Assembly: GCA_024704765.1 (NCBI GenBank)
Contig: JAKMXF010000031.1
Location: forward strand, 1 to 64,000
Length of the DNA stretch: 64,000 nucleotides
Direction of reading: 5' to 3'
Source: Oopsacas minuta
Lineage: Eukaryota; Animalia; Porifera
The first letter of the stretch is position 1, and the number at the start of each line of letters is the position of its first letter. A program made the position numbers and the translations under genes. The notes under the pieces were generated by a model that did no database searches, was not told the origin of the DNA, and worked only from the letters and a program-made list of their open reading frames with translations. Shown piece after piece: positions 18,401-53,973 of the stretch.

Positions 18401-21400
18401 AGTACTAGTTATCTGTACATCTGGAGAGTCAGTATTGATGTCGTACATCTCAGAGAATGTTCCTACCAGACTGGAGCACAGATCAACTGCAATCCCTGAT
18501 ATGTCTTCGCCTATGTTATACAATAAAATTATATAGCTCGTATAATGAGAGAATTACTTCCTACTGTAACGAAATATTCAAAGATGACGTCATGTCCACC
18601 CAAAATCGCCCTAGTTTCGCCTATGAACTAGCGTACGTAGATTTCTTTTAGTAATAAAGCTATGATATCAAACTAAGTTATATAATACGCGTATAACGCA
18701 TAATACGTTAAATGTGATCTATTTTGAAAGTATTATCCTTCTAGGTTAACCTGAAATATGAGATTTTGACACTGTTGGACTTGTATAAGTCACTTTATTA
18801 TCAAGTATGATATAATCAATTACTTATTTATTGCACAGCTGTACAGATCAGCTTTTCTATCTTCGAGGAAAGGATATTTTTTCGGATTAATGAAAGTCCC
18901 CTTTGTGAATGGAGTATGGTGTTTTGTATTGCAAAAAAAACTTTACTATACTATAACTCAGCTATATAAGGAATATCATTATTCAAGTCACTCCAAATCC
19001 AAATATACACAATACATCATGCATAAGCAACATTATTATCAAGTATGATATAGTTTGGTTAACAATGCTGAGATTTCTCATTAACAATTCTGAACTACTG
19101 TTTTGATGCAAAGTATTTATTGCAGAAATTAGCCTAACAGAAGTTACGTCATCAAAATTGTAGATTGAACGTATATGTAATACAAATTATACGAAATATG
19201 TCTTCATTGAAAGACGTATTACACAACTTAGCTATCATAAAAGTTTGATCAAAACTCCCAAACAAGTAAAGATATATTTGCATAGTATTGTGAAGCTATA
19301 TTAACACTAATCTATGACTCAATAACCACAAAACACAGAAAAATACACAGACACATTATATGCAAGCTAGATTTAAATATTTAAATCTGTCTAGACAACT
19401 CTATAAGCTAGTTACAAGACAATGGGATATGGATGGCTAGATAGGTCCAAAAATTCACCAACCAATATCAACTGGTAAAAATTGGTCAGGTCCAGTTTTG
19501 GCTGAGTAAAACTGGTCGGGGGACCAAATTTGGACAATAGGGATAATTATTGGTCCCGGACCAGTTTTGGCGTGACACTACTGGCTACCTCTTTGTGAGT
19601 AGACAACGCCTATAGGTTAAACAAATTATGAAGAGGAATACAGCAGTATGATTGTATTAGAGAAGGTTTAAAGAGGAATCTACACTATAACTAGTAATAA
19701 GAAATGACAGATTCAGACATCGGTTCAATCCATTTCAATGGTGCAATTAGGGATCGACCGGAGCTCCGATCGATCCCTTGTTCCTCAAGTACAACCTAAG
19801 AGCTGTTGGATTTGGCTCATTCAAATTACTTCAACCACCTCCTGACGAAGTTCTTCCTAATCAACACGTCGAGGAAATTGATGATGATAGTGAAGATTTG
19901 ATATATGCAAGGTTAAGATAGATTATAGAAATGACATACGTATATATTTTGATTTAGAATCTCGCATTTAAATTTCTTGGTTCCAAACCTATGATGTTTT
20001 GCTTTAGAAATAACTCTTAGCATAATATTTCATTAAACACCCCGGCTGGCCAAGGGCCGGGTTCTCAACTTTTTGACGGGGCGGTCGATCCCTAAGTGCT
20101 ATTCCAAGCTTAGGTCCTCAGGACTTAGGACTCACCCCATGCTTTCAGCGTCTGTTTAGTACATATACACATAATGCTGAATGAAATACTCACCGTATAT
20201 ACGTATAATATCCCTAAGAGCATCTGCTATATCATCATTCTCTGTCTCTTTAATAAGCACGAGTAATTCCCGAAGCAGAGAGCCTACGAATGGTTTAATA
20301 AAGTTTACACTCTCTTCATGTTCGTCAAACAGACTCAGTAGACCTATAGCAGCTTCTACACGTACAGGAAGCTCTGTCTCATTCATCAGACATCCAATCA
20401 GTCCCTGTATAGCTTGTTGGAGGTTAGGAGTAGAGAGATGGAGTTTGTCGAAATTGTGGAACATCCAGCAAGCTCTAGCTCTAAGATATGCGGTGGAGGA
20501 TGTGAATAGCGGATGTACAAATCTCACGAATAGTCCTTCTATCTCCTACAACCATAACAGTTAGCTGGATTAGGTAAGATATTGACAAGAATGCGACAAT
20601 ATTTCAAAATATTCGAGACACGAATTGATGAGTGTATATAATAACGCTTCCCAACATTTTCACATGTGGACACCCCATACACATTACTTTGGTGTGAACA
20701 TAGCACGAACTTTTCAAGTTTGTGGGTCAAACTTATTGGGCTCATCGCGACACTGGGAGACAAGACCAACACCCTGCATGACACCCAGGTGATGAATCAT
20801 CCCTGTAGCAGACATTAATTAAAGGAGTCTGTCTATATATATACAAACCTGCCTGAGAGATTTCTGCTCATATATAGCCTCGGATGCACAAGATATAACA
20901 TGCAAAGCTCCATCAGTTCTCTGAGCATTCCATTCATCACCTTGTGCAGCTAGGACTCTCATACAGTGCTCTAATACCATATTAAGCATACCTCTCCTCT
21001 TCTTCATACACTCCTGTAGCAGAGACTCGGCTGCACTAACAGGAGACAGGAAGTCATCAAATATATCAAATCTAATCCTTATGTACTCAGATGGATCTTG
21101 ATCCCACATCTCTTGGTCACGTTGTGAGTGACACATCAAAGGAAAGACAAGAGCCAAGAAGAGAGCCTCGAAATTTGGTTTGATTAGTTTCCATGATACA
21201 GAATGACTGATGGAGTAAGCGAGGTAAGATAGAGATGTCTGTAGGGTGTTATCTGTCATAGTACAGCCCTTAACGTGTAGATCTAATTGCTGTAAAAGTA
21301 ATGATACTACTTTCTCTGAGTAATGCTGAGTGAAGAACTTCTTGAATCTGACATGTTTCTTATCATCAGTATCAAAATATTTCTTATCAGTATCAAAATA

Positions 21401-24400
21401 TTTAACAATAAGCTGATAGAGGGTCTTTAATGCCCACTTCTTACACTTCCACCACTGAGCACTAGCTCGTGATTCTTCCGTTAGTGTCGCGTCTATTTCA
21501 GGTAGACCCTTGCCTATTACACACATCCAATAAGGGAACCATTGATGTAGGACATGGTCCTGGAATATGGATAATGGTAGATGACAGTTCACGACATAGA
21601 ATATAGACTTTAATACATAATGCTGTATGTAGTAAGATAGCTCATCCTCTTGATTCACTAGAGTACGACAGCGCTGGTATAACAGAGGTAGGAGAGTTTG
21701 TATTAAACCTATATGATATATGATATTAGCACAGCTCCTTAGGGAGATTACCTAATGGCATAAACGTACGTCAGTAAGCACTGCAGTGAGAACTCTAGCA
21801 GCCTATTTGCATGATAATTAGTACATATATACATTCTGTCAAAGATTTTGCAACTGAAACTTTTCAAACCTTATTGGTGATTAAGTAATCATATTTTCAT
21901 TTTCACAATATTCTATAAGGAAAATTAAAAACATGCTAGAGATTAAATTCAATTAGTTGTTAGAGGTACACATTGATAGTAAATATTCTACGTATTTCAT
22001 TCTGTACAATATTTCTTTAAATAAGTTTGTAATCTCGAATTATCCAATACTAGCCGCTTCACTTACTTGCTCTGCAAACACCTGTGTTTGTATCTAACGC
22101 CGCACTTTGTGCCTCGAATGTTTTCATAAAATATACTAATATTAACAAATAAGGATTGAAAGAATTCTGAATCAGAGCACCCGATTACACTGAATAATTC
22201 CATTAAGGTTAAGAAGCCAGGGATATCTGACTTGGGTCTAGCACACTTGCGTACAGTATGTTATTATTTGTTGAATTCAAACAAATTCATATATATATTT
22301 AATGATTAGGCCATGTAAAATAAAATACTTGTTTCTCATCCATTTTCTTCTGCGAAATAAGGGCGGGGGGCGGCATTTTATTTTTATTTTTTGCATAGCG
22401 TCATTTTACTAATTTATTTAAACTATCTCGTTAATACGAATTTCTGATAAGACTAACAATATTCGTACATAATCAGGTCCCCACAACCGTACTTCAATGG
22501 ATATTACTCCGGTTTATGAGCTCCAGAAAGGCGAATAAATTTTAACCGTACGGTCCATTGGTGTTCGTATTATGCTTACACTGTATATGGGAAAACGCGA
22601 TTAATCTATAATTGTATATAATAATAATGATAAAAATAATAATAATAAAAATTTAGTGCACACCCCAGGGCTGATTTTGCCATGCAGGGAGGGGTATTTA
22701 GGCCTGACTCGGACAGGTTTGAGTCTTGGTCAAAAATTCTGTTCTCTTTAGTTGCAAATATCACTATCTTATCGGGGCCAATGCCAGAGTCGTAGAATAG
22801 AAAATTCCTGTTAGAAAATGTCTTGATGTTGTCAGCGTCTAATTGAAGTTCTTCAAGAGATACTGGATTAGGTGGAGCAATACGTTGCCTTTTATACATC
22901 ATTTTCAGGGCGTGTTGATTTGGAAGCAGAGGCTTCGCAGATTCAGACAATAAACTGGTCATCTCTCCTATCGCAACGTGTGGATTGTCATTAGTTTCTC
23001 TCCCTCGCTTCCTCATTAAATCTTTCATGACTGTTACCTCATCTTTACCGTATTCCTGTGGATGAGAATGTTCCTCACACCGCCACTCCTTTTTGATAGC
23101 TCCCCGATGGAAAATATACAATATCCGTCGTGGGATAATTTGTTAGTCCCCTTTGAAGATTTGACTATTTGGAATGAAGTATCGCGATTAGCAGACATTA
23201 GATACTTGGTGATAAAATATTCAGCTCATCCAATGCATTTTATAGATCCCGAAATAATTTTGTAATTAATTAGAGTTTATTTATCTGTGAAACCTTTAAT
23301 TAACTTATCAAACATACATTACATTGTACACAACTGTGAACTATAAACCTTGTACGCAAGTGTGATGTACACAAGTGTGCGGCTCCCATTTTGTCAAGTT
23401 TTATTGATGTGTCTAAGGATTATTGCAAGGTAATCAATAATACCATATCAAAATGTATCTTCAGGGTATATACGATATGTTTGCAATGTTATTGGCCATA
23501 ACATTAATGCAGGGGTTCTTAACCTTTTTTGAAGTGAAAGACCCCCTATAAAGATCTGGTGAAAGCTATGGACCCCTGTCCAGAAACTGTACAAAACTAA
23601 ATAAGGCGTTAAGTTGACACAATATTATTATTCACACGCATGACAAATCTGAAGAAAAACTAAGGTGTTTTGAATTACTAGTTAATTAGTATATTAGTAG
23701 AATGCGTATGATTGAGAATTAGTATCTTATGATAATTGCGAGAAAAAATATTTCTCATATAAAAAGAATGCAAAGTTTGCAAAGTACATGAAACTCCTTT
23801 TCTGCTCGACGGTATGGACCCGCTGAAGGACACCTACGGACCCCTTGGGGTCCATTGACCCCAGGTTAAGAAACCCTGCATTAAAGGCTGTCAAGTTATA
23901 AGTGAATATTAGCAGAAATGTGTCATCTATGGTTACTACTATAACCCTAGAGCGGGGCGCATGCATTGGTTCTACTCGGAAAATTGGCGTTAGTTCTACT
24001 TTTTCAATGTGTAGGCATTAGTTCTACTCGGAAGATTGGCAGTGCTACTATTAATTAATCCAACAAAAGTCCATCCAAACACAAAACTAGCATGGACTCT
24101 ACATCTCCGCCCCTAGGTAGCTTAATAACGAGTACAAATGAAAACTCCCAGACCAATAAGGTAGTGAACAAAATTTCTAATCCCCTCCCAATGGTACGGG
24201 TTTATAATTTATACAATAAAATGCCCTATCACGTCCTCGTTTTTTATAAATCCATTTTCTATATCGATCTATCGACAACATAGCTAAAATAAATTCGATC
24301 TATCACAACGTCTGAATTCGACTAAAGCCAACACACGGAATACGACCTAATGCAGCGCCCAAATGGACACATTGAAAAAGTAGAACTAACGTCTACAAAA

Positions 24401-35488: not shown

Positions 35489-38400
35489 TTACTGATCTCC
35501 TGGATCAACTTCTCCAGGTGGGCCTATAAACAAACAACAAATAAACAATCAGTACGACGTATCATCTGTAGCAAAAGATCTCTCAGATTTGGTACATTTC
35601 AATATACTTTTAAGGAAATTTTGTGAGAAGAGATGTCTCGCTTATAGAATAGAAATCAATTGAGTGTCTAAGGCCACAGTTAATGAGAAACTTGTTTCAG
35701 CTACACGTTAGATACACCTGAACAAACATTCTGGCGGGCTACTCATTATTTTGTGAGATATCAGCTGGGAAATTAGTTCATTGACTTCATTTAACAATAA
35801 TATTAAAATCAATAAAGTCAAGTTTGCTATGAGAACTGTCTAGACTATGAATAAGATACTTCTATTGTACTCTAGCCGGTTTATACAACTTGTATTTAAA
35901 TACATTGAGTAAAATGGTGAAATAATGACAATAATGACAATANNNNNNNNNNNNNNNNNNNNNNNNNNNNNNNNNNNNNNNNNNNNNNNNNNNNNNNNNN
36001 NNNNNNNNNNNNNNNNNNNNNNNNNNNNNNNNNNNNNNNNNNNNNNNNNNNNNNNNNNNNNNNNNNNNNNNNNNNNNNNNNNNNNNNNNNNNNNNNNNNN
36101 NNNNNNNNNNNNNNNNNNNNNNNNNNNNNNNNNNNNNNNNNNNNNNNNNNNNNNNNNNNNNNNNNNNNNNNNNNNNNNNNNNNNNNNNNNNNNNNNNNNN
36201 NNNNNNNNNNNAATAATGACAATAATGACAATACCAGTAAGGTAGCCAAATCAGATGTGGGTGGTGGAGCTGAAACATGTTTCCAACTAACAGTGGACTA
36301 ACAATTGAAAATCAGTGAAAATTGGAAATACAAAAGTAAAGCAATTCTTAAGTATAAATAGAGGAAATATTTTGAGGAATAATGACCTGTAAAACTGAGA
36401 TTTTCTGTGAGTTATCGTCGAGTAGACATAACTACCCAAAAGCTAATCAATGAATGATACAGTAGGCACTCGAAGAGTGACTTCAACTGACAGGAAATAC
36501 TTAACACAGATTCCATCAAACTTATCAAGAACATAAGACAAAAAGTGTATTCTTATTCTTCCATACAGCTTGATTATATATTTTATATTACGATATGGAA
36601 GTCTAATATCTTTTGCATAGACTTATATTACACGAAGTGTATGGGCCCGTAGGCTGTAGCAGCGCTGCATTCGTCTGGATAATACCCTGCTTAGCACCGC
36701 GTTCATTCCATTATGGTATCTCACTGACTGTTCAAACAATACAAAGAGGTAATTAGATTAGGTTACTCACCATCCTGCATATCAGATGTCCATAGAGTTA
36801 GGTTATCTCTTAACAGCTGCATTATCAGAGTAGAATCTTTGTAGGAATCTTCATTCAGACTGTCTAGCTCTGCGATTGCATCATCAAAAGCGCCCTTGGC
36901 AAGTTCGCATGCTTTGGTTTGATCATCATGGATTTCGTAGTTGAACACTGAGTAGTTAAGAGCTAGTCTATGAGAAGAAAAGGTGTTGAGTACATTTATA
37001 ATATTTGGTGCTGAACAATGATTACTTACCCAAGTCGGATTGGGTGAGTGGATGGAAGACCCTGTAATTCACTGTCTACGTTCACTCCATTTACTGCCAG
37101 AGTTAGAGCTTCTTTGTATGCTTCATGGGCACGGTGAGCAACTTCTTTACGCGGTTTATCTAGTTTATATTCCGCCATGTAGCGGCAGTAATCTCCTTTC
37201 CTACACACATAGGTAACTAATCCAACAAATTACATAATCTATATTATTAAATCTCAATTGTTATATGTATGTTTGTCCGTTGTCAAGGAAAGATTTATGG
37301 TATGCAATTTTGAAATCGTTGCATAACTATGTGTTTATCGTGTTTATTAAGGAAGAAAATAAAATTCAATAAAACTTCACCAAATATATCGAATATGCTG
37401 AATCCGATTTTCACACTTTTGGATTAATCACAAGTGAGTTTATTGTTGTTTGTATGAATTAAAGTAAACAAATTTCAATATTGTTGTAGAATCATACTTT
37501 CAAAGACTATCCTGGGGTAATCGAGTATACTGAGTCTGAATATTGTAAACAACATTAATATTATTAAAACTACAATTGTTGTTATTGCGTTGAATACTTC
37601 GAGGTATATTGCGCCGAGTTCATCGCGAAGCGACGAGTCTAAGGCTCATGATGTAGAAATCAGTTTGTATGTACTCGTTTTGGAGAAAAGATGTACTTTT
37701 CGCCGAAACGAATTTCTTTCATTCTATTAATTATATAAAAAACATATTTGGATAAGATGAACTTCAGTTAGTACAAATTATTGTTGCCAGGGCGGTAGAC
37801 CGTCGACACTGGGGGAGGAATAAACTAAATAATTAGTGAAGCAGGTTTGCAATTAAATGAATAGATACCGTAGCTAGAAGTTACTACTGTATTCTCACTA
37901 GAATATCCGATCTGCCAAATATTGAATCGGATGAATGAGTGAGAATACAGTAGTTGATGAGGTTAATGTATATACAAATCCACTTGTATAATTCGATACT
38001 ATTTTCATCTTCCAACGAGTGCCGGATTATGCAGTTTTCACTGTCCACTGTAAGCACAACATTTCTAANNNNNNNNNNNNNNNNNNNNNNNNNNNNNNNN
38101 NNNNNNNNNNNNNNNNNNNNNNNNNNNNNNNNNNNNNNNNNNNNNNNNNNNNNNNNNNNNNNNNNNNNNNNNNNNNNNNNNNNNNNNNNNNNNNNNNNNN
38201 NNNNNNNNNNNNNNNNNNNNNNNNNNNNNNNNNNNNNNNNNNNNNNNNNNNNNNNNNNNNNNNNNNNNNNNNNNNNNNNNNNNNNNNNNNNNNNNNNNNN
38301 NNNNNNNNNNNNNNNNNNNNNNNNNNNNNNNNNNNNNNNNNNNNNNNNNNNNNNNNNNNNNNNNNNNNNNNNNNNNNNNNNNNNNNNNNNNNNNNNNNNN

Positions 38401-39802
38401 NNNNNNNNNNNNNNNNNNNNNNNNNNNNNNNNNNNNNNNNNNNNNNNNNNNNNNNNNNNNNNNNNNNNNNNNNNNNNNNNNNNNNNNNNNNNNNNNNNNN
38501 NNNNNNNNNNNNNNNNNNNNNNNNNNNNNNNNNNNNNNNNNNNNNNNNNNNNNNNNNNNNNNNNNNNNNNNNNNNNNNNNNNNNNNNNNNNNNNNNNNNN
38601 NNNNNNNNNNNNNNNNNNNNNNNNNNNNNNNNNNNNNNNNNNNNNNNNNNNNNNNNNNNNNNNNNNNNNNNNNNNNNNNNNNNNNNNNNNNNNNNNNNNN
38701 NNNNNNNNNNNNNNNNNNNNNNNNNNNNNNNNNNNNNNNNNNNNNNNNNNNNNNNNNNNNNNNNNNNNNNNNNNNNNNNNNNNNNNNNNNNNNNNNNNNN
38801 NNNNNNNNNNNNNNNNNNNNNNNNNNNNNNNNNNNNNNNNNNNNNNNNNNNNNNNNNNNNNNNNNNNNNNNNNNNNNNNNNNNNNNNNNNNNNNNNNNNN
38901 NNNNNNNNNNNNNNNNNNNNNNNNNNNNNNNNNNNNNNNNNNNNNNNNNNNNNNNNNNNNNNNNNNNNNNNNNNNNNNNNNNNNNNCTTCTACAGTAATA
39001 CCATATGCAGAATTTCCGAAACATACCGTACACTGTTACTCTGCCGCGGACGGACGGAATGACTTAACACATCGTTAATGGCAAAAGGACATTTCCCTAG
39101 AAGCTGTACTAATTGTCATATACAGGAACCATGGAGATATTATAAGGGTTATTCGGAGCACTCGGCCCCTAAGGCTCCCTATATCAAATATTCATACGAA
39201 TAAATCAGTAAATAGAGGAAAGACTGATAGCAATATTCTTTCCGATCACTGTTTATAAATGGTTGCTCTAGTTATGGCATAGGGAAAGATCCGAAATATA
39301 AATTCGTCAAAAATGGTACGCCAAGAGGAGCTACTAGATAATCCATAGTCCGGCACGGTTATTTTAGACTAAAGATATAAGATACATGGGGCATCCACCT
39401 CTAGAGAAGACATAGCGTTGGTAGAGAAAGCGATCGGGTTGTATAGTGTACACATATTTCTAAGTTAACTAACTTTGAGTATTTCAACTTTTTTCTCGTT
39501 TCGTGGCTCTCGACCCAATTCTTTCTGCTCAATAGAGCTTATTATTCTCCAGGATGTTCTCCTACTACCGATCACATTCTTGTAGGCAACTGAGAGCAGA
39601 TTCCTCTCTTCTGTCAACAGGACTTGTCCATGTTTGTGTTTCAGTTTGAGAAAGTCTTCCATTGACTGAACCATTTCTAGATCGTATTCATAAATAATAC
39701 CATAAAGATAACCAATAATGCTTACTTACCGTCATATCTCTCTGCTTGCTCAGCAAGTTTAGCAGCGAACACTTTAGGACTGAATTCCTTATTCTCAGAC
39801 AT
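35489..39802 (-). CDS. 14-3-3 protein; visible exons 39802-39730, ~39676-39476, ~37201-37030, ~36961-36770, 35523-35489; one middle exon missing, probably in the gap 38069-38987
   Basis: [90 protein letters not shown]. Confidence 0.92.
35922..36233. repeat. (AATAATGAC)n tandem repeat spanning assembly gap 35943-36211
   Basis: The same 9-bp unit lies on both sides of the N run. Confidence 0.8.
38069..38987. other. Assembly gap
   Basis: Run of N. Confidence 1.
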
Positions 39803-40066: not shown

Positions 40067-41990
40067 ATGGCAACTCGACACGGAGCGCTTGGTGAATCTG
40101 ATAATAGTGAGGGCGACTTGGCTGATTATACAGAACGCCTCGAGCATTATTATGTAGCTAATTAGATTGAATCGGCAGAAAAGTGAAGAGCTATATTACT
40201 AAGCTGTTGCGGTCCATAGACTTTTCAACTTGTGAAGATCTTGCTTGCTCCAGAAAAACCATACGGCGAGATAGTACAATTGGTAGGCACTCATCTTAAT
40301 CCTAAACCTTCGATAATAGTGCAGAGGATATTTGACTTAGTGAACTTGAATCTTTGGATACTTATATGGCTGAGCTGAAAAGACTTTCAGAAAATTGTGG
40401 ATTTGGCGAAACGCTGCAGGACATGTTACGTGATCGTCTGGTATGTGATATAAAGATGCAGGTGTCCAGAGCAGGTTACTTTCTGAATCTGAGTTTACGT
40501 ATAAGAAGGGATACGACATTCACTGGGTGTGGAATCCGCAGAACGGAACGCGAAGAATCTTCAATCCCAGAAGAAGGAAGAACATCTAACAATGAAAACC
40601 TAGGCTCAGGCCATGCCTTCGTCATGAATTCTTCAGCTCGATAACACACAACCCTACGTGGTCAGAGAGGTTTGTGTTATAGATGAGCTGGAAGGCATCA
40701 ATCGAAGGGCTGCAGTTTTAAAGAGGCGACGTGTTACAATTGTAATATACGGGATCATTTAGCTAAAGTTTGCCAAAGCAAATCGGGGTCAGATTCTACC
40801 AGAGGGTATTTTAAGCTCCGATGATCGGAAAAATGTGAAGCTATAAATGATTTTGTGTAGTAACAAAATGCAAAATGTGAAGTATAAAAAAATGTGTTTG
40901 AACTTTACATGTCAAAGGACATTCAGATTTTGTAACTTTCACTTCAAATGAAGATATCGTTAGGGATGTTCATCGTTGCATTGCACCTGATGTAGATCTT
41001 GCCTCAGTAGCTGATCAATATGATGATATCGTTAAATTTGAGTTTCCAGAAAGAACCTCAAAGAAGGTTTTATGTCATCTTTGTTCAATCAAAACTGGGG
41101 ATTTTTATGAAATTTCTATACTATTAAGTCGCATTTTGGTATGTAAACCTCATTCGGCGGATTGTGAGAGGTTAATTTCTGCTTATAATAAACTTAAAAC
41201 TCAAGAAAGATCTTCTCTATCTCGAAGTACGATCAGTGATTATTTATACGTCATATCAATATGCCTGAATTGAGTAATTTTAATCCAAGACCAGCAGTGT
41301 ATATTGGATTAATGAAGTGGAACATAGAAAAAGAGATTCATTGAAAGCAGGAGATCAAAAATGGTACAAAAATGTACTCGAACATAGTCTAACTGACACA
41401 AATTTAGATACTATCACTTCAGATAGGACCATTAAGAGATTATTCTAGATTTCTTAAACTTGTAGCTGGACATGTTACTATTTTATAGAATAATACATCA
41501 ATAACACGATTCCTATACTACATGGTTAGATAAAAGAGGTGGATAGTATAATTATGGGACCTAATCGCTCGGGGACCTAATTTACTCGTACTATTTTGGA
41601 GATGTGAAGTTATAAAAAATCGTTAAAATAACCCCTGGATTCTACTTATGCGCCTGGCCGCCTGCTCGTCTGAGAAATATTCATAACTTAGGCCATGACA
41701 ATGAAAACGCCAATCACGCGCCTGAATATAGCATTAGATATATAACATTAGAGATCTAGTGTGTAGGCTTAGGTTTAGGGTATCTAACTAACAATGGAAA
41801 TCTATACAGGACCAAATACACTAGACTAAGAACCTATACAGGGGAGACTATCAAAGTTATAGGTGAAATGGAGGTTGAGCTAACGCTAGACAGTCAATAA
41901 GAAAAGCTTTTCCTGGTTAATCGTGGATGGCGATGGACCGAGCCTATTGGGGAGAGACAGGTTAAGGAAACTGAGAATCAATTAGTGTCA
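40067..41990 (+). mobile_element. Decayed Ty3/Gypsy gag + protease remnant, interrupted by a hAT fragment
   Basis: DYTERLEHYY...RAILLSCCGP..FQLVK.LLAP and YMAELKRLSENCGFGETLQDMLRDRLV (gag); LRTYTGETIKVIG...VDGDGPSLLGRD (protease end). Many stops. Confidence 0.82.
40900..41450 (+). mobile_element. hAT C-terminal dimerisation-domain fragment nested in the Gypsy remnant
   Basis: KPHSADCERLISAYNKLKTQERSSLSRSTISDYLYV.INMPELSNFNPRPAV. Confidence 0.75.
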
Positions 41991-42389
41991 ACTGAACCAA
42001 ATTTATTATTAGTCTCATTTACTGAATGTATTTATACAAGTTATACGTTAATTATTCAGGTGTCAAGTGGTGAAATAGAAAGTTTCTGTAATATCGCAAT
42101 ACGTATTATTCTAGAACATTCCTCTCTGCTGCACTGATGACAGGATCATATTAGTTAGTATTTATAATAACTCTTGGATTAGGCTTCAGAGTATTCTTAG
42201 ATTATACCTGTAATTGTAGATTCATAAGATTCCCACTACTGATACATTATACTTTACTATTCCCTTGAATGTTATGTCATCTTCAGTTACCTAACAACCA
42301 TAATACACAAGAGTTATTTAACTCTTCTCACCTGTCAGTCAATTTGTAATTTTGCGGAATGATTATTTAATCCCAGATTTGTACTACCG

Positions 42390-42582
42390 TAATTATGAAT
42401 ATACAAAGAGTGAAATATGATAATTTAATTACTAACAAATATGTAAACACAACAATTGAATTAATATATATCTATTACACTATCAATAAAACTAGTACAA
42501 ATAATATCAAAGTTATTATTAACAACTATTCCTCTAGGATGATTACATTTAATTTTGTGTATCAGCTGTCCATCTTTAGTAA
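42390..42582 (-). pseudogene. 3' end + 3' flank of an NHL gene (paralogous to 4980-5165)
   Basis: The reverse complement aligns with ttactaaagatggacagctgatacacaaaattaaatgtaat...tatttgtt...cactcttt at 4981-5165. Confidence 0.9.
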
Positions 42583-43258
42583 ATGGACAGCTGATACTAG
42601 CTTAGAGAGACCTGCCCTCTCTTGGACAGCATTCATGGGGTTGAGTCTCAGGAGAGGCTGTAGTATTCCCAGTTCTTGTTCGTAGTCCCTCTTTCCCAAT
42701 GACAGAAGCATAGGAACTGTTTTGCATTGCAATCCGACTGCATTACTCACTGACTCTGGTAAACTACTGCTCCACCTCTACCCACGCCTGAAGAGCCTCT
42801 GGAGATGATAACAGGAATTGTGTGTCCTCTCTTTCCACAAATGAGATTGAGGCCTGTAGTCTAGCTAGTCTCCCTTCTGGTGCCTCACACACTCCTAGAG
42901 AAGAGGGGATCTCTTTTGTATCCGGGGACTTAGTTTCCCTAAAGGAACTGACTATCCACCAGAGAGAGGATTTCCCCTTGAGTGATTTCTTGCGGGAGCG
43001 GGACATGTAGAGCTTGGGAGCTCCTGGCACCAATTCTGTCCTCTCAAAGAGGGACTCATCCACTATATGTCAGTTATCAGATATTGTGGTAGCGGTTATT
43101 TACAGTTGTGTTCGCCTAATAGCAATATTGCTCAATTTGTAAGTTACTTTTAGCCCCTAAGTGAGTATTTCTTGTATATTTTGTTCCTCTAATAGCAAGT
43201 TAGCTTATTAGTTACCAAATTCCATTCAAAATGCGACTTCTTATTACTCAAACACCAC
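42583..43258 (-). pseudogene. Liprin-alpha-like fragment (SAM1 region), copy 1
   Basis: Near-duplicate of 51240-51902; MLLSLGKRDYEQELGILQPLLRL resembles liprin SAM1. Confidence 0.7.
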
Positions 43259-43284
43259 TCCTTATTTCAGAGGTAGCATTCTCT

Positions 43285-43405
43285 GGTAGACCTAGAGCTA
43301 CCGCTTTTATAGCATAGCAATCCTCTGTTACTGTTCCTGTAGACTTCAAGTACTTCCAAACTTCTCAAATGCATCCACCTTCACAACCCATATAGTATAT
43401 AGAAT
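43285..43405 (-). pseudogene. Cathepsin-B-like (papain family) fragment
   Basis: MGCEGGCI*EVWKYLKSTGTVTEDCY then, after a frameshift, YKSG...EC. Confidence 0.55.
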
Positions 43406-44558
43406 AAGATATTCACATACTTGCTGATTAGCCTCCCAAGATTCATGGATTATCACAGAATTTTCATACAAATCAAAGGAAGAAATTGATTTTTCCAAAT
43501 AATTGTTTCAAATTGCTATTTAAAGATGGAAACTTGGAAATACCGAAATTTAGCAAAGAGATTATACAAATAGGTTTGCCAGTGATTAACTGTCACATTT
43601 TGCTAGTTTGTATACTGCCTTCATCTCCCTATAATACTTCTGATTTCCTTCTAGAATCCTTAAATTCAACGTCAACATACTAGACGAATGGAAACGATTG
43701 TTGTGCCAGGAGATTAATTATTGTTGTTTGATTTTGGACCATTTCAGGCAGTAACTGGAGTACGTTCCCAATAGATACCAAATTCTCTTTGATCTCTCAA
43801 AAGTTCTAACTTATCATCCTCTTTTGCAATAAGAATAGACTTTGTATCATTAATGTCAATGGACGTTACCAACTATGATGATGTCCTTTCCTACTAACTG
43901 CTGGTACTTCACCATCAAATGGGACTGAAGGACTAATTGGCATTTCACTACTTTCGACCAGGATAAAAGGAAGTGGAGATATTGTATGGGCAATACGATT
44001 TAGTGCTAGAATTCTCATGTTTCACTCATCTACTGAGTCTATTCCCTGTCTCACAGTAGAGACTGTACCTAGTATATTCTTGTTGGCTAGGCCTATGCCC
44101 ACCATAGCTTGTTCCCTCTCCCATCTGCATTTTTCCAACAGCAGCTCCTTCATTACTACGTAGCACTTTTCTATACGGCCCTGCACACAATTTCTCTATC
44201 TCTATCCTGTAGCAATTGGTGTGAAGGATCCAGTGATGAGATAGCTCAGAATCAATAGTTCTGAGCTCTTCGTGCTCTTTGAAGCCATCCAATCCTAAGT
44301 CTGTCTGTACAAACTGGTTAGCAGAGGGAGTGAAGGTAGGATGTTGAATGGAAGAGGAACTAGGTGGATCTTGCAGCTTCTGTACCTTCAATGATGGATA
44401 GTAAGAACTGGTCGGAGCACTACCCGAGGCGCTTGATTTGGGTGTGGTGTAGGGTTGGGAGGGAGACTCGGGAGTATCTGAGTCTGAATATTTGCGTTTA
44501 CGAGTTGATTTGAGACTAGTGTTGCTAGGGGTGGGGGTAACGTCATGTGATGCATTAA

Positions 44559-44645
44559 GTTCTCCTCACACCAGTCTAAAGTAGATGTGGTATAGCCCCA
44601 GTGTCCCTTGATGTGGTATTTATCCGTCCATACATTAGGAGCCAT
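44559..44645 (-). pseudogene. Alkaline ceramidase (ACER3-like) N-terminal fragment
   Basis: MAP...GHWGYTTSTLDWCEEN, the family's N-terminal signature, then an abrupt switch to unrelated Pro-rich sequence. Confidence 0.8.
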
Positions 44646-46429
44646 TATTAGGAATCCTAGATCTAAACAAGGAGATAAAAATAAAAAAATAGTTAATGAA
44701 GGGAATGAAGAACTATAGGTGCTATAGTACACTAGTAAACAAAAATAAAACATAAATAAGATTACATGCAATGTAGAGATGTCAACAAATGAAATGCTAT
44801 AATATATAGGAATTAGTTAGTGATAGAATGCTAAACTAACCAATAAATAAGAATCTGCTGTATTGAACCTGAACCTACGGAGTCCACTAAGTGATGATTA
44901 AAGTAATCTTGTGGTAAGTATAAGTTAATCGGGTCAAAACGGAGCTTCGAAGTTACAAATCAAGAAAACTGTTGAAAGGATTTAATAGACTATAGAGTAT
45001 TAAGAAAAGGAAATAATCTGTGTAAGATAGAAATAATGGAAATAATCAATATACTAATGTTCAGGTACGGGAATTTTTGAGTTGTCTGTGATTATCATAT
45101 TGCTTATACCATTCTTTTTGATGTAATTAGCTTTCTGACCCTCCCCTCCAGTCATGTGTATTTCCTGTATATGTATAGCAGCATATATCATCTCCTGCAT
45201 GTCTAACACCTTATAAAGTTCGGTATGGACTCCTCCTCCTGAAAACATAAACAAAATAATAACGAATATAATTGTAACGAAAATAAACTATACCATCAGC
45301 TGCGCGACAGCTTAGTGCCTCAGGTTAGAAAACAATAAATTCATATATGATTAATCCAAAAGTGTAAAAATCGAATACAGCATATGCGTTATAATTAGAA
45401 CGTCATGATGACGTAATAATTCCATGATAAGTTAGCTTTTGGTCAGAATCATGACATCAGGACATGTGGCACCTTGAGGAGTACCTCTGTTTCAAAAATT
45501 TCAAACTTCTATCAACTATATTTGCTGAGCAGTGTTGAATAATGTGATTTTTGAAAATCAAAAAGGTGACAATTAACTCACAGTTTTGGTCATAGGTCTG
45601 AATTTTCCTTCAAATACTCGAAATGGTCCGAGGCAGGACCAAAGTACCCCCCCTGTATACCAAAAATCAGCCCTCGAGGTTCTCCAGGTTTTTCAATCAA
45701 TTCTGGACATACTAACATATATATGCACACTACCCTGTGTAGCCGTTTAGAGCAAGCCTGTATTTACATTTTGAAATTTGGCCAATTTGTTTACTTTATA
45801 TTCATAAAAACAACAATATGATTTCTCTTCGTAAGATCATCTGTTGTATGTTGCTAATGGTATCAGAAACACAAAGAATATTCCATTATTTCCTAATTAG
45901 TTATGATTTCTAGTCTATTGTGTAAACATTTAGATATTAAGCGTATCAAACAATACAAATACTTTTTCAAGTCAATTGAAGGATAATATTCGTAGAATCA
46001 ATCTAGATACAACATTCATACATTCTAGCAAACCATAAAACATATCTTTGAAATATCAAAATATTGTTACTTAGTAAACCATAACATTAAAATTCAAATC
46101 TTGTATAAGATTAACCTTGCTCAGTTTAGCAGCGCCAAATACTCAATTTGGACGGTAACGACAGATAAAGGTTGAGAAACGCTGGAGGGTTTATCTCACT
46201 ATTTGAATGACCATTTAATAAACAGAACTTACCGCTTCGCTAGTGAAGTGGGTGGGCTGTCACCGGGATGCTTCCGCTTGCGGCAAGCGCGATCCGTTGG
46301 CGGTGGAGGAGGAGGAGGAGTTGGAATCGGGATCTAGTAAAGAAAATAAAATAAAACTCGTCCGTAATAGGATGTATACATTCACACATTCTGGTGTACT
46401 CACTCTTGGTGGTGGAGCAGTAGTTGCTA

Positions 46430-47110
46430 GATAGAACAAAAGTTGTACTCGAAGGGAGTCGCATACCATTCGAGACCTATCTAGTTCCTCCTTCAATACT
46501 TTCTCACATTTTAATAGAGCTTGCTTCTCATCCTCCAGTTGTTTCCTCCTAGTCTCCTCCATTTGAGCATTATTCTCTATTTGCTTCTTCAAATTGTGAT
46601 TAGCTCTAGTGAGTTTCTTGATCTGATCACGTAGATAACTTGTTAGTTTATCATTCTCTACCTGTAACATCTTATATAATATTTCAAACATTGAATAATT
46701 GGAGAACAATTGTACTGGAGTTTCATGCAAATTAATAATTGGAGAAATTCCTATTTACAATTTGTATATTATTCCTATTTAAGTCACATTGAAGTGTCTT
46801 AAACTATTTTAATTATTCTTAGACAATTCGTTAGTGGATTTTGGGAAAATTTTAACGCAGAATATAATGAAGGGATTATCAATGATCAGTAAGATAGATG
46901 AAACTAACTTTCTTAGAATCTTCAATTGGGATAATTTTCTGAGTTTCATCCGTTCTTACCAACGTTCTACTGTTTATGATCTTTGGTTAAGTCAGCTTAT
47001 CCACTCCCTCTTTCTCCTTCTCCTTCTCCTTCTTCTCGAAGAATTCTTTCAATAGCTCTTCTTTCTCACAGTCAATAGCAAGCTTTATTTCGGGCATTTT
47101 CGTTCCTCAC
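46430..47110 (-). pseudogene. Unidentified coiled-coil protein fragment
   Basis: Heptad-like VENDKLTSYLRDQIKKLTRANHNLKKQ...LEDEKQALLKCEKVLKEEL; the upstream part has stops. Confidence 0.4.
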
Positions 47111-48138
47111 GTAGAATGTGTTTTAATTATTCAGGAAAACAAGACAATAGTTCAATAAAAATAGGGAAGAAATAGAAATTAATAAAAATTAGATAATTTT
47201 TAATAAATTATAAATGAGAATTTCCAAACTTATGGGTGTATAAAAATTGAAATTATCATAGATTGTGAATATGCGAAGTATTTGGAAAATTGATATTATC
47301 CATTGGCTATGTACGGTATCGGCTCCTCTAAATGTATCAATTTTTCTTTTCACTTCTTTTATACCTATATTTACCCACATATGATGAAAACTGGAACTTA
47401 TACGTCTTGCCGTTGGTTTGATATTAAACATAGTATTACGATTTGGGAGCATATCTAATTGAAGAGCATTGACGAAATGTCGGAGCATAAAGAAAGAAAT
47501 ATTTCGAATATTAAAATTGAATCAAAGAAATTGTAATGTTCTAAACTTGAATGGATAAAGTTACTAATCATATTTATTACTTTGATTGGTGAGAAGACCG
47601 CTGACAGGCTAATGGCAGTTCAAAGAGAGTTTGAAGTATCTCAAGGATCGGATTTCTTTGGAGTGGAATAATTAAAATTTACAGTGAATAATACAAACTC
47701 TATGAACAACAAATACACATGCAATGTGATTATAACTATCCTATTTTATCATATCGTTTGAAAATGCCAAAAATGGAAAGAAAAATTGATAAACACCCAT
47801 TCAAATGTACAAACCACTGTTTCTCAATATTCTTTGGGCCAAATAGCTCCCTTAAACACTTCCGGTGGGCGAAGAAACGCCCCCAGCGTGAGAAAACTGG
47901 TATAAACCAATAAATACCAAGTTAGAGTATTAAATGATATAATTAGTTCAACAACAGCAGAATCCATAGAAATAACTAATACAAAATAAATAGCAATGAT
48001 TGTATCTATTGTATCAGTACGGAGATTAGAAATATACAATTCAAAATATTACAAAGCTTTAGAGAAATAAGTTTAGTGCAAAATACAAATAATATACAAA
48101 TGAGGGCTGACCTATAGCTATCGGATATTTACATAGTT

Positions 48139-49857
48139 TCAAGCAAAATACACTCCTTTGAGAATCTCATCGTGTATCTGTACTAGTTTAAACAGGTTTA
48201 AAGTTCTCCGCTCATCGTTTGCAAACTCAATACTAATAAAGAGATATATTAATATATTTGCGAGATAATAGTCACCATTAAAATGCATTGGGTATAACAT
48301 TTGTAACACTTTCTCAGAGATGAACCAAGATTTCTCATAAATAATTAGAATAATTCCGAGTTCAACAACTTTATATGAATATGCTAAGGTTGAATATTAT
48401 GAATAACTTACCCATGTTCATCTCTCTCCATCAAATGGTATCTAGCTCTGAAAGCAACTAATGCGCGTAATAAGCAGGAGCTGGAATAGATACAGATCTG
48501 GTACACCCTACATATGTATGAAATAATTGGTAAGTAAGAGATTGTATCTCATCAGCTGTAAAGTTGTTCTCATCCCATAATACGTGGCAATGAGATGGAT
48601 GAGATGTTCTCTATAAGAACAATATTCAATTGAATTATTGGTTGAATATACATTGATCGAAGGTCTAATAGAAACAGTAGGACAGCGGTCCCAAACATTT
48701 TCACCCGTGGACTCATATACCATTTTAACACATGCTGTGGACCTCTTCACAGAAACCACTGAGATCCTGTGGGCCCTTGTTGTCATCTGACCCGCGGCAT
48801 TAAGAATTTCTAGCAATCAAAATCAATAAGATCGCTAAAACATAATCCAACCATATAACTTAATACAAAACTTATATACGTATTACAAAATATGTGTAAA
48901 ATAGCTCCAAAAATAAGAACTTACAAATATTTACATATAACGCTAGTGTATCCATAAATGAAGCAAATTATAATCTACAAATTGCAACTACAGATGCCAT
49001 AAATAATTAATATTACTTTCCTATATACATACCTGAATACCTGAATGACTACACAGATAGAAATCAATTCTGTTGGATGAGTAATACCTACATCTACTGT
49101 AGTACCAGCTGGGATGTTACCAGATTTACCACATTGATCTTCCTCCTCTGAACAGAACAGATGGTGTGGTGTCTCTTCTGGACTGTAACGAATGTAATGC
49201 CAGGCTTGTAGTCAGCTTCTAAGATATTACCAAAGATTCTCTTACGGCTCTCCATTCTTGATTCAATACCTGTGACGTAAATAGACTCATTACATTATAA
49301 CTATCATACCTTCAACCCTCTCAGAATCTTGCAATTCACAAGAAATTTGGGAAAGATTTGCAATTTTCGTACCTGATTCCCCAAATAATCGCCCAAAATG
49401 CTTTTCATGAAGAATTTTGAAAATCCGGGAAATGATTATAGAGGTTGATAAGAATGTAAAATATAAAAGTAGTTGAATTGAATACTGAACATATTTAGTT
49501 TGCATCTTTGGATATCCCAAAAGATATTACAGTCAGTATTCCATCCAGAAATATTGGCAAGGGGGAGAAGTACCTAGGGTCCAATCAAATATTCCATTGT
49601 TATTGTATATAGTATATTCTTATAGTTAAACTGCGATAACAACATAGCATGACTGTACTGACCTGTTGAACTTGTCCTTCACTGACTCCATCCCGAAAGA
49701 ATATAATCCTCTGAGGCTTAAACCTGGCAGATTTGTAGAATTAAATCAATAGATCTCGGACCATAGCAGCTAACTCTGTTATTATCTCTTGTCTGTGTTG
49801 CTGTACAAGGACTGAAGCACTGTAAGGACTAGGATGAGCGTCCATACTTTCAACTAA
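48139..49857 (-). pseudogene. AGO: Argonaute (AGO-clade) PIWI-domain C-terminal half, 4 exons, disabled
   Basis: Exon 49857-49663 [23 protein letters not shown]...[23 protein letters not shown]. Exon ~49270-49033 PGITFVTVQKRHHT.LFC...GKSGNIPAGTTVD.GITHPTE.DFYLCSHSGIQ. Exon ~48612-48410 [15 protein letters not shown]...[24 protein letters not shown]. Last exon ...VQIHDEILKGVYFA*. TAA stop at 49743-49741 plus several 1-nt frameshifts. Confidence 0.95.
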
Positions 49858-49954
49858 CTAACAATACAAGAAAGAGTGTAAATAGCGAATTGAAATGTTA
49901 TAACGGGTATTCGGACTCAGCCACTTCTGACTTGTTGAATATTGGAGAGAATAA

Positions 49955-50316
49955 TACAGGTAGCAGTGGATACCGGTAGTAGTGGATACCGGTAACAATG
50001 GATACTGGTCGCAGTGGATACAGGTAACAGTGGATACAGGTAGCAGTGGATACTGGTAACACTGGATACTGATAGCAGTGGATACAGGTAACAGTGGATA
50101 CTGGTAGCAGTGGATACAGGTAACAGTGGATACTGGTAGCAGTGGATACAGGTAACAATGGAAACAGGTAGCAGTGGATACTGATAGCAGTGGATACAGT
50201 TAACAGTGGATACTGGTAGCAGTGGATACAGGTAACAATGGAAACAGGTAGCAGTGGATACTGGTAACACTGGATACTGATAGCAGTGGATACAGGTAAC
50301 AGTGGATACAGGTACC
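49955..50316. repeat. Minisatellite, 16-bp unit (agtggatac(a/t)ggta(a/g)c), ~22 copies
   Basis: Tandem array read directly from the sequence. Confidence 0.95.
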
Positions 50317-50605
50317 AGGGGCATCTATTGTATGCTAGTTATAAGAACCATGGATATGCACTAATTGAATAATGATGTCCGCCACAATGCTACACATGTT
50401 CTCACCTATACACGATTTGTAAAGACGGAAACTAAGAAAGCAAAGTTAGGGAAAAATACAAATAAAATGTTTGTATTTAGCAAAGTAGTATTCAACAAAT
50501 CACTTCATTTATATATACAAAAGCTAGCAATATAATTTGACAGGGTTAGTCTTATCGCAGTCTTATCGCCCCTCCTAGGGCTAAGGAGTATGGGAGTCGG
50601 GATTC

Positions 50606-51902
50606 TCAGGCTCTTGAAGACATTCTTGGACTCACTGCGTCGCTTTTCCGCCTGAATAGAGCAAAGTTCCTCTTCTTTGCTTTCTTGTCAGAATTCGAAG
50701 AATCCTGTTGAGACATTAAATCGTCAAGTAACGCCTTACGTAGTTTCCTAGCAACCGAATCATTCTGAGGAATTTGTAGAGTACTAACAATTTTATGATA
50801 ATCATATGAGTTATCAAAATATAGGACAGCTCCGTGTGAGACCTCTAAACTCAATGTTACCACTGTAACCACCCAGACCAATGGAATGTAACCATAAGGA
50901 AATCTGTCCATTGGACCTAAGGGTAGATCTGTCCTGTCTGTGAATGATTGTCTCTGCTTGTTTTATAGAATATTCCTCTCATTGTTGTTGGAACTCTTAA
51001 CCATTCCTAAACTAGTCCTTAGTTCCTTCTTGGACAGATGTTCTAGCACCCTTCCGTCTACACAGCATTGTCTAGAAATAATAGGAAGGTAAATAACAAC
51101 AAATACACGTGTTAACTAACGAGTAAATAACAACAAACCTGAAAATATTGCTGTACTGAGTTAGACCTAGTGAAGGCAGCCAATGAGAAGCTATCCATTC
51201 GTGGTTAACAGCCCTGTAGGTGGGGTAGAGACAAGGGGTACTAGCTTAGAGAGACCTGCCCTATCTTGGACAGCATTCATGGGGTTGAGTCTCAGGAGAG
51301 GCTGTAGTATTCCCAGTTCTTGTTCGTAGTCCCTCTTTCCCATTGACAGGAGCATAGGAACTATTTTGCATTGCAAACTGACTGCATCTCCCACTGACTG
51401 CGGTAAACTACTGCTCCACCTCTACCCACGCCTGAAGAGCCCAGGAGACCATACACAGGAATTGTGTGTTCTCTCTTTCCACAAATGAGATTGAGGCCTG
51501 TAGTCTAGCTAGTCACCCTTCTGGCGCCTCACACACACCTACAGAAGAGGGGATCTCTTTTGTATCCGGGGACTTAGTTTCCCTAAAGGAACTGACTATC
51601 CGTCGGATAGAGCATTTCCTCTTGAGTGATTTCTTGCGGAAGCGGGACATGTAGAGCTTGGGAGCTACTGGCTCCAATTCTGTCCTCTCAAAGAGGGACT
51701 CATCCACTATATGTCAGTTATCAGATATTGTGGTAGCGGGTATTTACAGTTGTGTTCGCCTAATAGCAATATTGCTCAATTTGTAAGTTACTTTTAGCCC
51801 CTAAGTGAGTATTTCTTGTATATTTTGTTCCTCTAATAGCAAGTTAGCTTATTAGCTTTCAAATTCCATTCAAAATGCGACTTCTTATTACTCAAACACC
51901 AC
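50606..51902 (-). pseudogene. Liprin-alpha-like triple-SAM C-terminal region, copy 2, disabled
   Basis: SAM1 (KRDYEQELGILQPLLRL), SAM2 (VNHEWIASHWLPSLGLTQYSNIF | QCCVDGRVLEHLSKKELRTSLGMV) and SAM3 (VSHGAVLYFDNSYDYHKIVSTLQIPQNDSVARK). GT-AG intron near 51138-51072; stops and frameshifts present. Confidence 0.85.
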
Positions 51903-52019
51903 AGATAATGCATATTGATTAAACTGTGCTTTATAGTGTATTCAAACAATATACTAAAGTAGTATTACGAATGGAAATATCAAAGAGTTCAAATGTTCAT
52001 TGAAATTTTTGTGATCGGG

Positions 52020-52334
52020 TTATCGGTCCTGTAGATTGCTTAGGTGTTTGTGTGATTTGGAATTTACATTTCTACAACAATCAGGCATTGGTACAATATT
52101 CTTGGAGCGGATAGATCCTTGCCTAATTAAAGCATCTAAATTATCTTTCCCTTCAACCATCACCATGTACCTCTCAACTCTCCCAACAGAATTGTGTTTT
52201 CCCAATTTCAATTTGGTTCTCTTGGGAGTCTTTGGAGGAGATGAAAAGGTAACCTCCTTAATACTATAATTCCGAAACTTCCCTTTCCCTCTGAGCGAAG
52301 ACGTAAATGCTCTCATCCCAGTTTCCTTTCCCAA
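52020..52334 (-). CDS. Hypothetical basic protein, 104 aa
   Basis: Open ORF only; a homologous ~45-bp piece recurs at 58899-58940. Confidence 0.3.
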   Translation of the reverse strand: MGKETGMRAFTSSLRGKGKFRNYSIKEVTFSSPPKTPKRTKLKLGKHNSVGRVERYMVMVEGKDNLDALIRQGSIRSKNIVPMPDCCRNVNSKSHKHLSNLQDR

Positions 52335-53020
52335 TTAACTTCCAGAAAGCGGAAGCATGCTTGTGACACCCCCCCCCACTCACCAACAAAGCACTCCATG
52401 TGTCTACGTCCCTATATATTGTCGTTGAGAGCCAGTTTCCTTTCGATTACATGTATATTAAGATAAATATCCCGAAAAGACAACAAACTTCTATTTGTAA
52501 ATTAGTATTATATTGTAAATACCAATTCTGCTAACGTCATCACTAAATCCCGCCTAAACAACTCAACCACAAATTTATGAACCTCAACGATGTCACAAAG
52601 GATCCCCGTACCCAATAAATGATTCTGGTTGAAACCTGAAACCGTACTTGTAGCTACGGTCCTGTAGTTTAATAAGTATAGTTTGTCTATAAATGCCAAA
52701 TACACACTGGCCTTCTCGAGAACATATCTGCCGTATAGTAAGTAGGCTATTGTATCTTCCTCTAGCGAAGTTAAGATCAAAAATAAGAGAGGGAAGTTTC
52801 TAAGCGGGGATAGTTGAATACTAGCGCAACGCTTGCTAGTACGCTGTACGACAGCTTAATGCTTCGCGTTAACCTATGTATTGATTAAACAGCTAAAGCT
52901 TATAGAGTTATTGGTCGCGTAGCGACCAATAACTCGAGCCAATAATATACCCATCTGACTTAGCCCATGATATACTCATTATTACGCAATCAACAGAATA
53001 GTGAAATGTAAGTAATCAAT

Positions 53021-53359
53021 TCAGTGATAATTGGGATACAGCTGTTTATAGTCCTTTATGTGATTTTCTCTTGTATCCTGGCTACAACAACCTGTAGCAA
53101 TCAGGCGTTGAGCCATTTCCCTAACCCGCAAATCATTCAGGCTCCTAAACTCCCTGATACTTGTATCACTTACAACCCGCCGATGTAGCAGCTGTCTCAT
53201 CCTCAACAGTTTCTGGCGTCTTCTAACTGCTAACATGCGCCTTCTCTCAGCCTCTCTGCGCATTCGTGTTATGGCTCGAAACCGACGCTGTATTAGTATA
53301 ATCGGCATAATCCTGGGTGAGTTCTGTGCCAATAATTGTCCAGAAGGAATAGGGGCCAT
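53021..53359 (-). CDS. Orphan Arg-rich small protein, 112 aa (copy A)
   Basis: 96/112 aa identical to 63025-63399; many synonymous differences. Confidence 0.7.
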   Translation of the reverse strand: MAPIPSGQLLAQNSPRIMPIILIQRRFRAITRMRREAERRRMLAVRRRQKLLRMRQLLHRRVVSDTSIREFRSLNDLRVREMAQRLIATGCCSQDTRENHIKDYKQLYPNYH

Positions 53360-53973
53360 CTTTTTGTCAAAGTACAGTCAATTCAATAATATCTAATTCA
53401 GCAATAACTAATCACATAAAACCATATATTAAATAGTACTTAGCCCATGCGCTACTAGCATACTATAGGCAGATGAAACTAAAGTGAACTACTGACACGT
53501 GTTGATATGTAATTTGGCTTCTGGGTCAGATATTTTTTAAGTGCTGGACCACACAGTGGGCTATAATTGCGAATTATTAGTATTAGGGTTTACGCGTTCA
53601 ATTTTAGAGATAGGTTTATAAAATACATTATTACTGTATAGTAAGTCGACTATTGTGGTTCTTTTGTTGATTTCAATTTTGTTCTATCACATCAGGTTTT
53701 CAATATATGACGTAATCTTAATTACCATATACAGTAATACAGAAATCTAGATATACACTGAACTGAGAATTATTAAAAGAAATAGAATATGAATATATTA
53801 TGGCTATGGTAACTGAAGAATAACTAACATACGAATATCTTACTGATGAATTAATTTATTTAACTGCTGGACCAGTTTGCATTATATTCAAATATTTGTG
53901 CGTCACTTATATTATTTCACTTCTTTGAGTGCCTAAGTTTTATCCGAATTGTTCCACTTTTTTCTAAATAGCC

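Follow-up and report, generated by a model that had tools for sequence, protein, structure and literature searches.

A mosaic of co-oriented gene fragments in the sponge Oopsacas minuta is probably one unit of an amplified segmental duplication

How did pieces of several unrelated genes come to lie side by side, in a single orientation, in the compact genome of a sponge? The question is raised by the window analysed here, the 64,000 nucleotides at positions 1-64000 of the 70,665-nt Oopsacas minuta contig C31 (JAKMXF010000031.1), in which the region 42.4-51.9 kb contains dead, intron-bearing gene pieces, every one of them on the minus strand. An earlier sequence-only reading attributed this mosaic to capture by a Helitron or Pack-type transposon or, alternatively, to serial template switching, and overlooked that the mosaic belongs, as a single unit, to an amplified family and reaches 53.4 kb. 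We consider it probable that the block represents one unit, together with the tail of a second unit, of a segmental-duplication duplicon, that is, non-coding scar tissue which would have originated by break repair and was subsequently amplified. Own-genome searches covered the 61.46-Mb assembly (365 contigs), and protein-level searches were run exon by exon, with no exons joined into spliced models.

Tracing the fragments to their parent loci, as had been proposed, identified a liprin-like gene on contig C288, a locus on C335 that contributed both the Argonaute (AGO) and the cathepsin-B pieces, ACER3 on C303 and an unnamed gene on C358. The liprin parent is an intact coiled-coil and SAM gene (SAM by Pfam), of which the copied part begins at residue 281 of a 508-aa exon, takes in a small intron as well as the last exon, and reaches into the 3' flank; both liprin pieces of the window (50375-51739 and 42595-43258) match it at 82-89%. 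This parent occurs twice in the assembly, at C288:538758-543235 and C363:148094-152570, in opposite orientation and with 99-100% protein identity, a pair which may have arisen by very recent duplication or may be haplotigs left in the assembly. The AGO parent (C335:196005-198111) contains introns and open PIWI exons, and the next gene on the same strand is cathepsin B, the first exon of which (C335:193629-194201) has Peptidase_C1 and Propeptide_C1 Pfam matches. Collinearity with C335 holds for window positions 47214-49943 as well as 43259-43670, so that the AGO and cathepsin-B pieces represent one capture that was split later. The window's AGO PIWI exons (~49633-49857, 49024-49311 and 48411-48607; Pfam Piwi matches of 2e-17 and 5e-8) keep their introns and contain two frameshifts, and a cathepsin-B exon-2-like remnant at ~43314-43394 contains an in-frame stop.

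The real ACER3 gene begins contig C303, where 110 nt are available for comparison: the exon-1 start in the window (44558-44770) shares 93% identity with C303:2-111 and 89% with C55:123458-123744. Longer dead ACER3 copies are located at C55:123.4-123.8 kb and C41:47.6-48.0 kb. A full-length member of the coiled-coil family adjoins an ACER3 fragment at C55:122-124 kb, in the same order and orientation as in the window, and it is therefore unlikely that these two pieces of the mosaic are independent. The unnamed-gene parent (C358:45464-46083) has a 201-aa open frame, for which protein atlas scores (at most 0.80) were uninformative as to a name, and the idea of a Tousled-like-kinase N-terminus was dropped; the corresponding ORF (open reading frame) of the window is open over 44029-44565. 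In the NHL piece, the ORF at 42464-42601 aligns with the end of an NHL gene at 3936-5102, which itself has an NHL Pfam match.

Each of the fragments listed in the sequence-only reading is present on the minus strand, and a control set of ten plus-strand ORFs yielded no credible Pfam family. Among 20 minus-strand ORF pieces of the mosaic, Pfam matches were confined to Piwi, Ceramidase and SAM pieces, with none to the 179-aa ORF, the coiled-coil ORF (46263-46754) or the ORFs at 52-53 kb. The further proposal of the sequence-only reading, capture at the DNA level, holds as well, since the AGO and liprin pieces follow their parents collinearly through introns and flanks, both of which were copied; this is not the pattern of a processed pseudogene (retrocopy). 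The same applies to the claim of at least two mid-exon junctions, since the liprin 5' break falls at residue 281 and the ACER3 piece is broken right after WCEEN.

The mosaic is not confined to this locus. Own-genome searches recovered its blocks at 85-97% identity on contigs C113, C97, C41, C55, C358, C294 and C302 and, inverted, on C31; the composite now exists in about a dozen copies on eight contigs. Blocks of 1-4.5 kb with introns and flanks included are found on C31 (twice), C113, C97, C41, C55 and C358, which corresponds to a duplicon in size (copies of at least 1 kb), identity and content. All ten full liprin copies begin at residue 281, and AGO exons e1-e3 are missing from every copy. 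Furthermore, in a tree of the liprin block (nine copies and the parent), the nine copies form one clade that is separated from the parent by a stem of 0.075 and then radiates. The common breakpoints and the single clade on a long stem indicate that the composite arose once and was amplified later.

The apparent second liprin piece (42595-43258) belongs to a tandem duplication, in which it forms the tail of the preceding unit; the end-to-start junction of this duplication (43258/43259) is also present in C97 and C113. The stretch 43671-46212 is restricted to the lineage comprising the left C31 copy, C113 and the second unit of C97, and the junction of the NHL piece to the mosaic is specific to the window's copy. 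On C31 an inverted duplication was observed as well, with arms at 46213-53427 and 62954-70545 (~7.2 kb, 91-95% identity). These arms, which differ by 5-9% and by indels, are separated by a 9.5-kb centre occupied by a pogo-like element and a KDZ transposon; the right arm is truncated where the contig ends, and this palindrome was seen on C31 only. Copies end at different points at different loci, namely, in window coordinates, at 51908, ~52500, 52974 and 53427 on the liprin side and at 42595, 43219 (40 nt upstream of 43259) and 48652 on the other. The search for further copies and shared termini suggested by the sequence-only reading was thus productive with respect to copies, but fixed termini were not found.

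The joins themselves carry scars. At the tandem junction, where an end was newly joined to a start, the original flanks were identified at 51902/51903 and C55:89659/89660; the unit ends read ...ACACCAC followed by TCCTTATT and ...ACACCAC followed by AGATAATG, and homology to C335, C55 and C332 begins at 43256, so the CAC is common to both sides, as in microhomology-mediated joining. The AGO and liprin-flank pieces are separated by a short filler (Table 1), and the join of ACER3 to the C358 piece is essentially blunt, with one extra A. When the window was compared with the liprin copy at 51 kb and with the NHL gene, the insertion at the NHL-liprin junction proved to be the reverse complement of 13 nt located at a distance of 13 nt, ending in a TAC microhomology with liprin. 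Snap-back templated insertions of this kind are typical of polymerase-theta end joining (theta-mediated end joining, TMEJ), and the scar, a nearby-templated insert ending in microhomology, has the form expected of it. Taken as a set, the junctions read as signatures of end joining or template switching, and in this respect the earlier alternative of template switching agrees with what was found.

A formation history in five steps can be read from sequence comparison, with the repair pathway inferred from the scars. First, the 3' half and 3' flank of the liprin-like gene were joined via the filler to a 4.3-kb piece of C335 that carried the AGO 3' half together with the beginning of cathepsin B, the adjacent gene on that strand. 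Second, a block with the orphan coiled-coil gene and the ACER3 5' fragment took the place of the cathepsin-B 5' part, a piece of the C358 gene was bluntly joined to ACER3 in mid-exon, and short interspersed repeats were inserted. Third, the composite was amplified by tandem duplication at the CAC microhomology (period of 8,644 bp here), by inverted duplication giving the C31 arms, and by dispersal, each site acquiring a different end. Fourth, in the window's copy the upstream unit was cut and joined to the NHL gene 3' end with the snap-back insertion. Fifth, the copies decayed by frameshifts and stops. Such lesions are present in the AGO, liprin, cathepsin-B and C358-derived pieces of the window, and dN/dS values of 0.3-1.2 are compatible with relaxed constraint and too noisy to show selection.

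Several observations weigh against a dead, repair-derived and subsequently amplified duplicon. C97, C113 and C294 are small contigs that are made up largely of these repeats and contain gaps; they may be haplotigs, in which case the copy number would be inflated. Helitrons are present in the O. minuta genome. In addition, the coiled-coil ORF has stayed open in four copies, although they have diverged by 5-18%, and a GenBank gene model covers it, so the unit need not be entirely dead. This coiled-coil family has only three members among 1.84 billion representative proteins, all from Oopsacas (LOD99_10369, LOD99_14487 and LOD99_11928). The first of these, LOD99_10369 (KAI6660637.1, 169 aa), is the model within the window, a five-exon gene on the minus strand, and may be chimeric, since its last exon sits in repeat and ACER3-upstream DNA.

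The single orientation of the fragments is also a point against the duplicon. Unrelated fragments do share one orientation, as the sequence-only reading emphasized, but they are not nine independent pieces. AGO and cathepsin B derive from one locus, the second liprin piece is a tandem copy, the coiled-coil and ACER3 pieces are neighbours on C55 and probably one block, and two repeat blocks are not gene fragments, which leaves approximately four independent joins. All of these still agree, and a directional mechanism may have been involved, but the chance of such agreement is ~1/16 (p ~0.06) and co-orientation is suggestive at most. For the most part, the shared orientation goes back to the source loci and to the duplications.

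The alternative that survives best, although we regard it as unlikely, is transposon-mediated capture, in which a Helitron, a Pack-type element or a neighbouring hAT or KDZ element would have taken up the co-oriented fragments and spread them by transposition or transduction. Maize Helitrons carry fragments that are short, abutting, co-oriented and intron-bearing, as are those of the mosaic, and hAT, PIF, mariner-like, KDZ and pogo transposons are located around its copies, with a hAT end 8 nt from the copy boundary in C41 and a KDZ element beginning 2 nt from the end of the left arm. A mobile element, however, should leave constant termini, whereas the copy boundaries vary at every locus and the shared ends of Helitron arrays are lacking. 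Helitron-type TC...CTRR termini were not seen at the unit and block junctions read, and CTRR/T was absent from those at 43670, 43945, 44557, 46213 and 47108-47124. Scans for terminal inverted repeats (TIRs) of at least 12 nt bounding the insert (43600-46300) returned only weak, chance-level pairs, shorter TIRs lying outside the scan, and no inverted repeat of at least 40 nt flanks the C358 copy, the flanks of which are NHL-gene and local duplicate sequence. Helitron Rep genes do exist in the genome, with 43 Helitron_like_N matches and at least 30 loci, but none lies on the mosaic contigs. The Helitron-like repeats reported at 45330-45820 proved to be the arms of a foldback element resembling a miniature inverted-repeat transposable element (MITE), surrounding a nested short repeat, and the junctions carry the microhomology, filler and templated insertion described above.

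Quite improbable, in our view, is a functional source of small or chimeric RNA, in which a hairpin formed by the C31 arms, or a uni-strand cluster, would generate small interfering RNAs (siRNAs) or Piwi-interacting RNAs (piRNAs) directed against the parent AGO and liprin genes. The layout would suit such a role, as long inverted arms and gene pieces on a single strand are both present, the unit includes an annotated gene model, and the ACER3 piece brings ~200-300 nt of upstream sequence that may include a promoter; in mouse oocytes, pseudogene hairpins are known to yield endogenous siRNAs. Amplification with variable ends and free decay nevertheless require no function, and the palindrome was seen on C31 only, where its right arm is truncated. 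We likewise give little credence to the broader idea that the duplicon is a working genetic unit, either through a palindrome hairpin producing small RNAs that target the Argonaute and liprin genes of the sponge itself or through an amplification tied to the coiled-coil family in the manner of a 'core duplicon'.

Least of all do we favour a largely artefactual mosaic, whose order and copy number would have been falsified by collapsed or mis-joined repeats or by retained haplotigs: the published genome (365 scaffolds, ~61 Mb; PMC10280926) was indeed built from PacBio and Illumina reads with SSPACE scaffolding and gap filling, N gaps occur in C97 and C113, C31 ends inside the repeated unit, the near-identical C288 and C363 liprin loci reveal haplotigs or very recent duplicates, and the first 3.7 kb of C113 are reshuffled C41 pieces of 99-100% identity, but an artefact is unlikely for the junctions because the key ones are each found again in two or three contigs, at 1-6% divergence, and no gap lies within 42-53.4 kb (the assembly gaps of the window are at 35943-36211 and 38069-38986), while the arms are too divergent for a missed adapter and the snap-back junction bears the mark of a biological process that an assembler would not produce.

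The mosaic is real and well supported, and its probable kind, the segmental-duplication duplicon, is known and ordinary. It resembles the mosaic segmental duplications of primate pericentromeric and subtelomeric regions, in which unrelated intron-bearing pieces are likewise juxtaposed, the resulting block is duplicated again with ends that vary, identity between copies is 85-97%, and a lineage-restricted gene family can be embedded, as in 'core duplicons'. The Oopsacas version is much smaller in scale, its pieces measuring 0.2-4 kb and its units 3-11 kb within a compact genome of 61 Mb, and no telomere repeats were found in the sequence examined. Gene capture by plant Helitrons, Pack-MULEs and CACTA elements gives rise to similarly short, abutting, co-oriented and intron-bearing fragments, from which chimeric transcripts are possible in principle. 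Here, by contrast, no defined termini, TIRs, target-site duplications or 3' hairpin were found, boundaries vary by copy, and no linked Rep/helicase or matching transposase was detected. The 3-nt microhomologies, 10-nt filler, blunt join and 13-nt inverted templated insertion are shared with polymerase-theta end joining and with microhomology-mediated break-induced replication (MMBIR) and fork stalling and template switching (FoSTeS), systems from which the Oopsacas case differs in that its pathway is deduced from scars. Hairpin endo-siRNA loci and uni-strand piRNA clusters have in common with the duplicon their inverted pseudogene copies, single-strand layout and transposon-rich surroundings; they differ in that the Oopsacas content, described here from its DNA, is mostly host-gene debris and not antisense transposon fragments.

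A compact 61-Mb sponge genome thus contains primate-style mosaic duplicons with clean end-joining scars, and this has a cost for annotation. A whole-genome scan yielded 35 Piwi-domain matches, and ~7 loci, on C169, C221, C88, C134, C324, C309 and C335, look like real AGO/PIWI genes. Counts of AGO/PIWI, liprin and ceramidase genes in Oopsacas can be inflated because most of the Piwi-domain matches are dead fragments of the duplicon family, and some hypothetical models, LOD99_10369 among them, may be chimeric. Transcription of the inverted arms, if it occurred, would make the locus a simple example of small RNAs that derive from pseudogenes in an early animal.

Table 1. Features of the mosaic and its continuation, in window coordinates.
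Feature	Position	Strand	Remarks
NHL-repeat gene 3' end, last 46 codons and 3' untranslated region	42386-42601	-	91-96% to inverted 4979-5177
Snap-back templated insertion, 13 nt	42585-42597		NHL-liprin junction; window compared with NHL gene and 51-kb liprin copy
Liprin tail, truncated end of preceding tandem unit	42595-43258	-	Equivalent to 51239-51902, 95%, spacing 8644
Cathepsin-B locus remnant	43259-43670	-	Collinear with C335:193065-193485, downstream of cathepsin-B exon 1
Interspersed repeat R1, ~262 bp, at least 10 dispersed copies	43684-43945		Own-genome DNA search
Unnamed-gene fragment, frameshifted	43945-44556	-	From C358:45464-46083, 83% DNA and 77% aa identity
ACER3 (alkaline ceramidase) upstream region and first exon-1 codons	44558-44864	-	Ceramidase E=0.0077
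Interspersed repeat R4, 144 bp, at least 12 copies	44924-45067		Contains 63 nt described as TRAF-3'-flank-like
LOD99_10369 exons	47005-47097, 46906-46938, 46404-46658, 46232-46333, 45214-45237	-	GenBank
Foldback/MITE-like repeat, two arms (45331-45398, 45735-45818)	45331-45818		Surrounds nested R2
Nested repeat R2, 323 bp, at least 25 copies	45402-45724		Own-genome DNA search
Interspersed repeat R3, at least 8 copies	45884-46159		Own-genome DNA search
Coiled-coil family member, 5'-truncated	46213-47108	-	Oopsacas-only gene family
Argonaute 3' half and downstream flank	47124-49943	-	89%, collinear with C335:194667-197343
10-nt filler	49944-49953		Junction of AGO and liprin flank
16-nt minisatellite	49954-50373		Inherited from liprin parent 3' flank; parent array C288:539287-540017
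Liprin-like gene 3' half and 3' flank, frameshifted	50375-51739	-	Residue 281 of 508-aa exon onward, small intron kept, last exon
Unit continuation past the end of the sequence-only reading	51740-53427		Patchy; inner end of left palindrome arm

Several of the remaining blocks are repeats. The resemblance between 45005-45065 and 9425-9480 that had been pointed out is genuine (88.9% over 63 nt for 45005-45067 and 9423-9481), but the supposed TRAF-flank block is not a gene fragment, being part of an interspersed repeat (Table 1). Rfam and tRNA scans of 41.5-54 kb produced no real match and thus no evidence for tRNA-derived short interspersed elements. Within the unit continuation, 51740-53427, pieces matching C320:21980-22345 and C320:24164-24673 are accompanied by a 96-nt repeat and an Arg-rich small ORF. 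A 198-nt segment (window 50381-50578) that separates the liprin 3' end from the minisatellite has the same orientation in the parent and both C31 arms, whereas four copies (C113:13135-13333; C97:3077-3274 and 18749-18948; C358:14518-14717) carry it inverted. The occurrence of this inversion does not track the liprin tree, which suggests recurrence or exchange between copies.

Beyond the mosaic, the rest of the window comprises ordinary genes (NHL, TRAF, importin-like and cathepsin L by ORF reading) and several DNA transposons, and a retrotransposon gag-like ORF is located just upstream of the mosaic on the plus strand (40354-40644). NHL-repeat genes or pieces adjoin duplicon copies on three contigs (C97:21148-22442; C358:16033-16349 and 22209-23114; window 42386-42601), which could be chance, as the NHL family is large. 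Beside the C55 copy, an ORF resembling the PCM1 C-terminus (C55:86440-86847; Pfam 7e-11) represents a gene fragment or a real gene. Of the transposons near the copies, the hAT elements at C113:575-3282 and C41:29688-35059 are 99-100% identical, and this family looks to have been recently active; the C41 element carries a nested PIF/Harbinger-like element (DDE_Tnp_4 and Myb), and the C113 element interrupts another sequence, with a ~10-bp overlap at its flanks.

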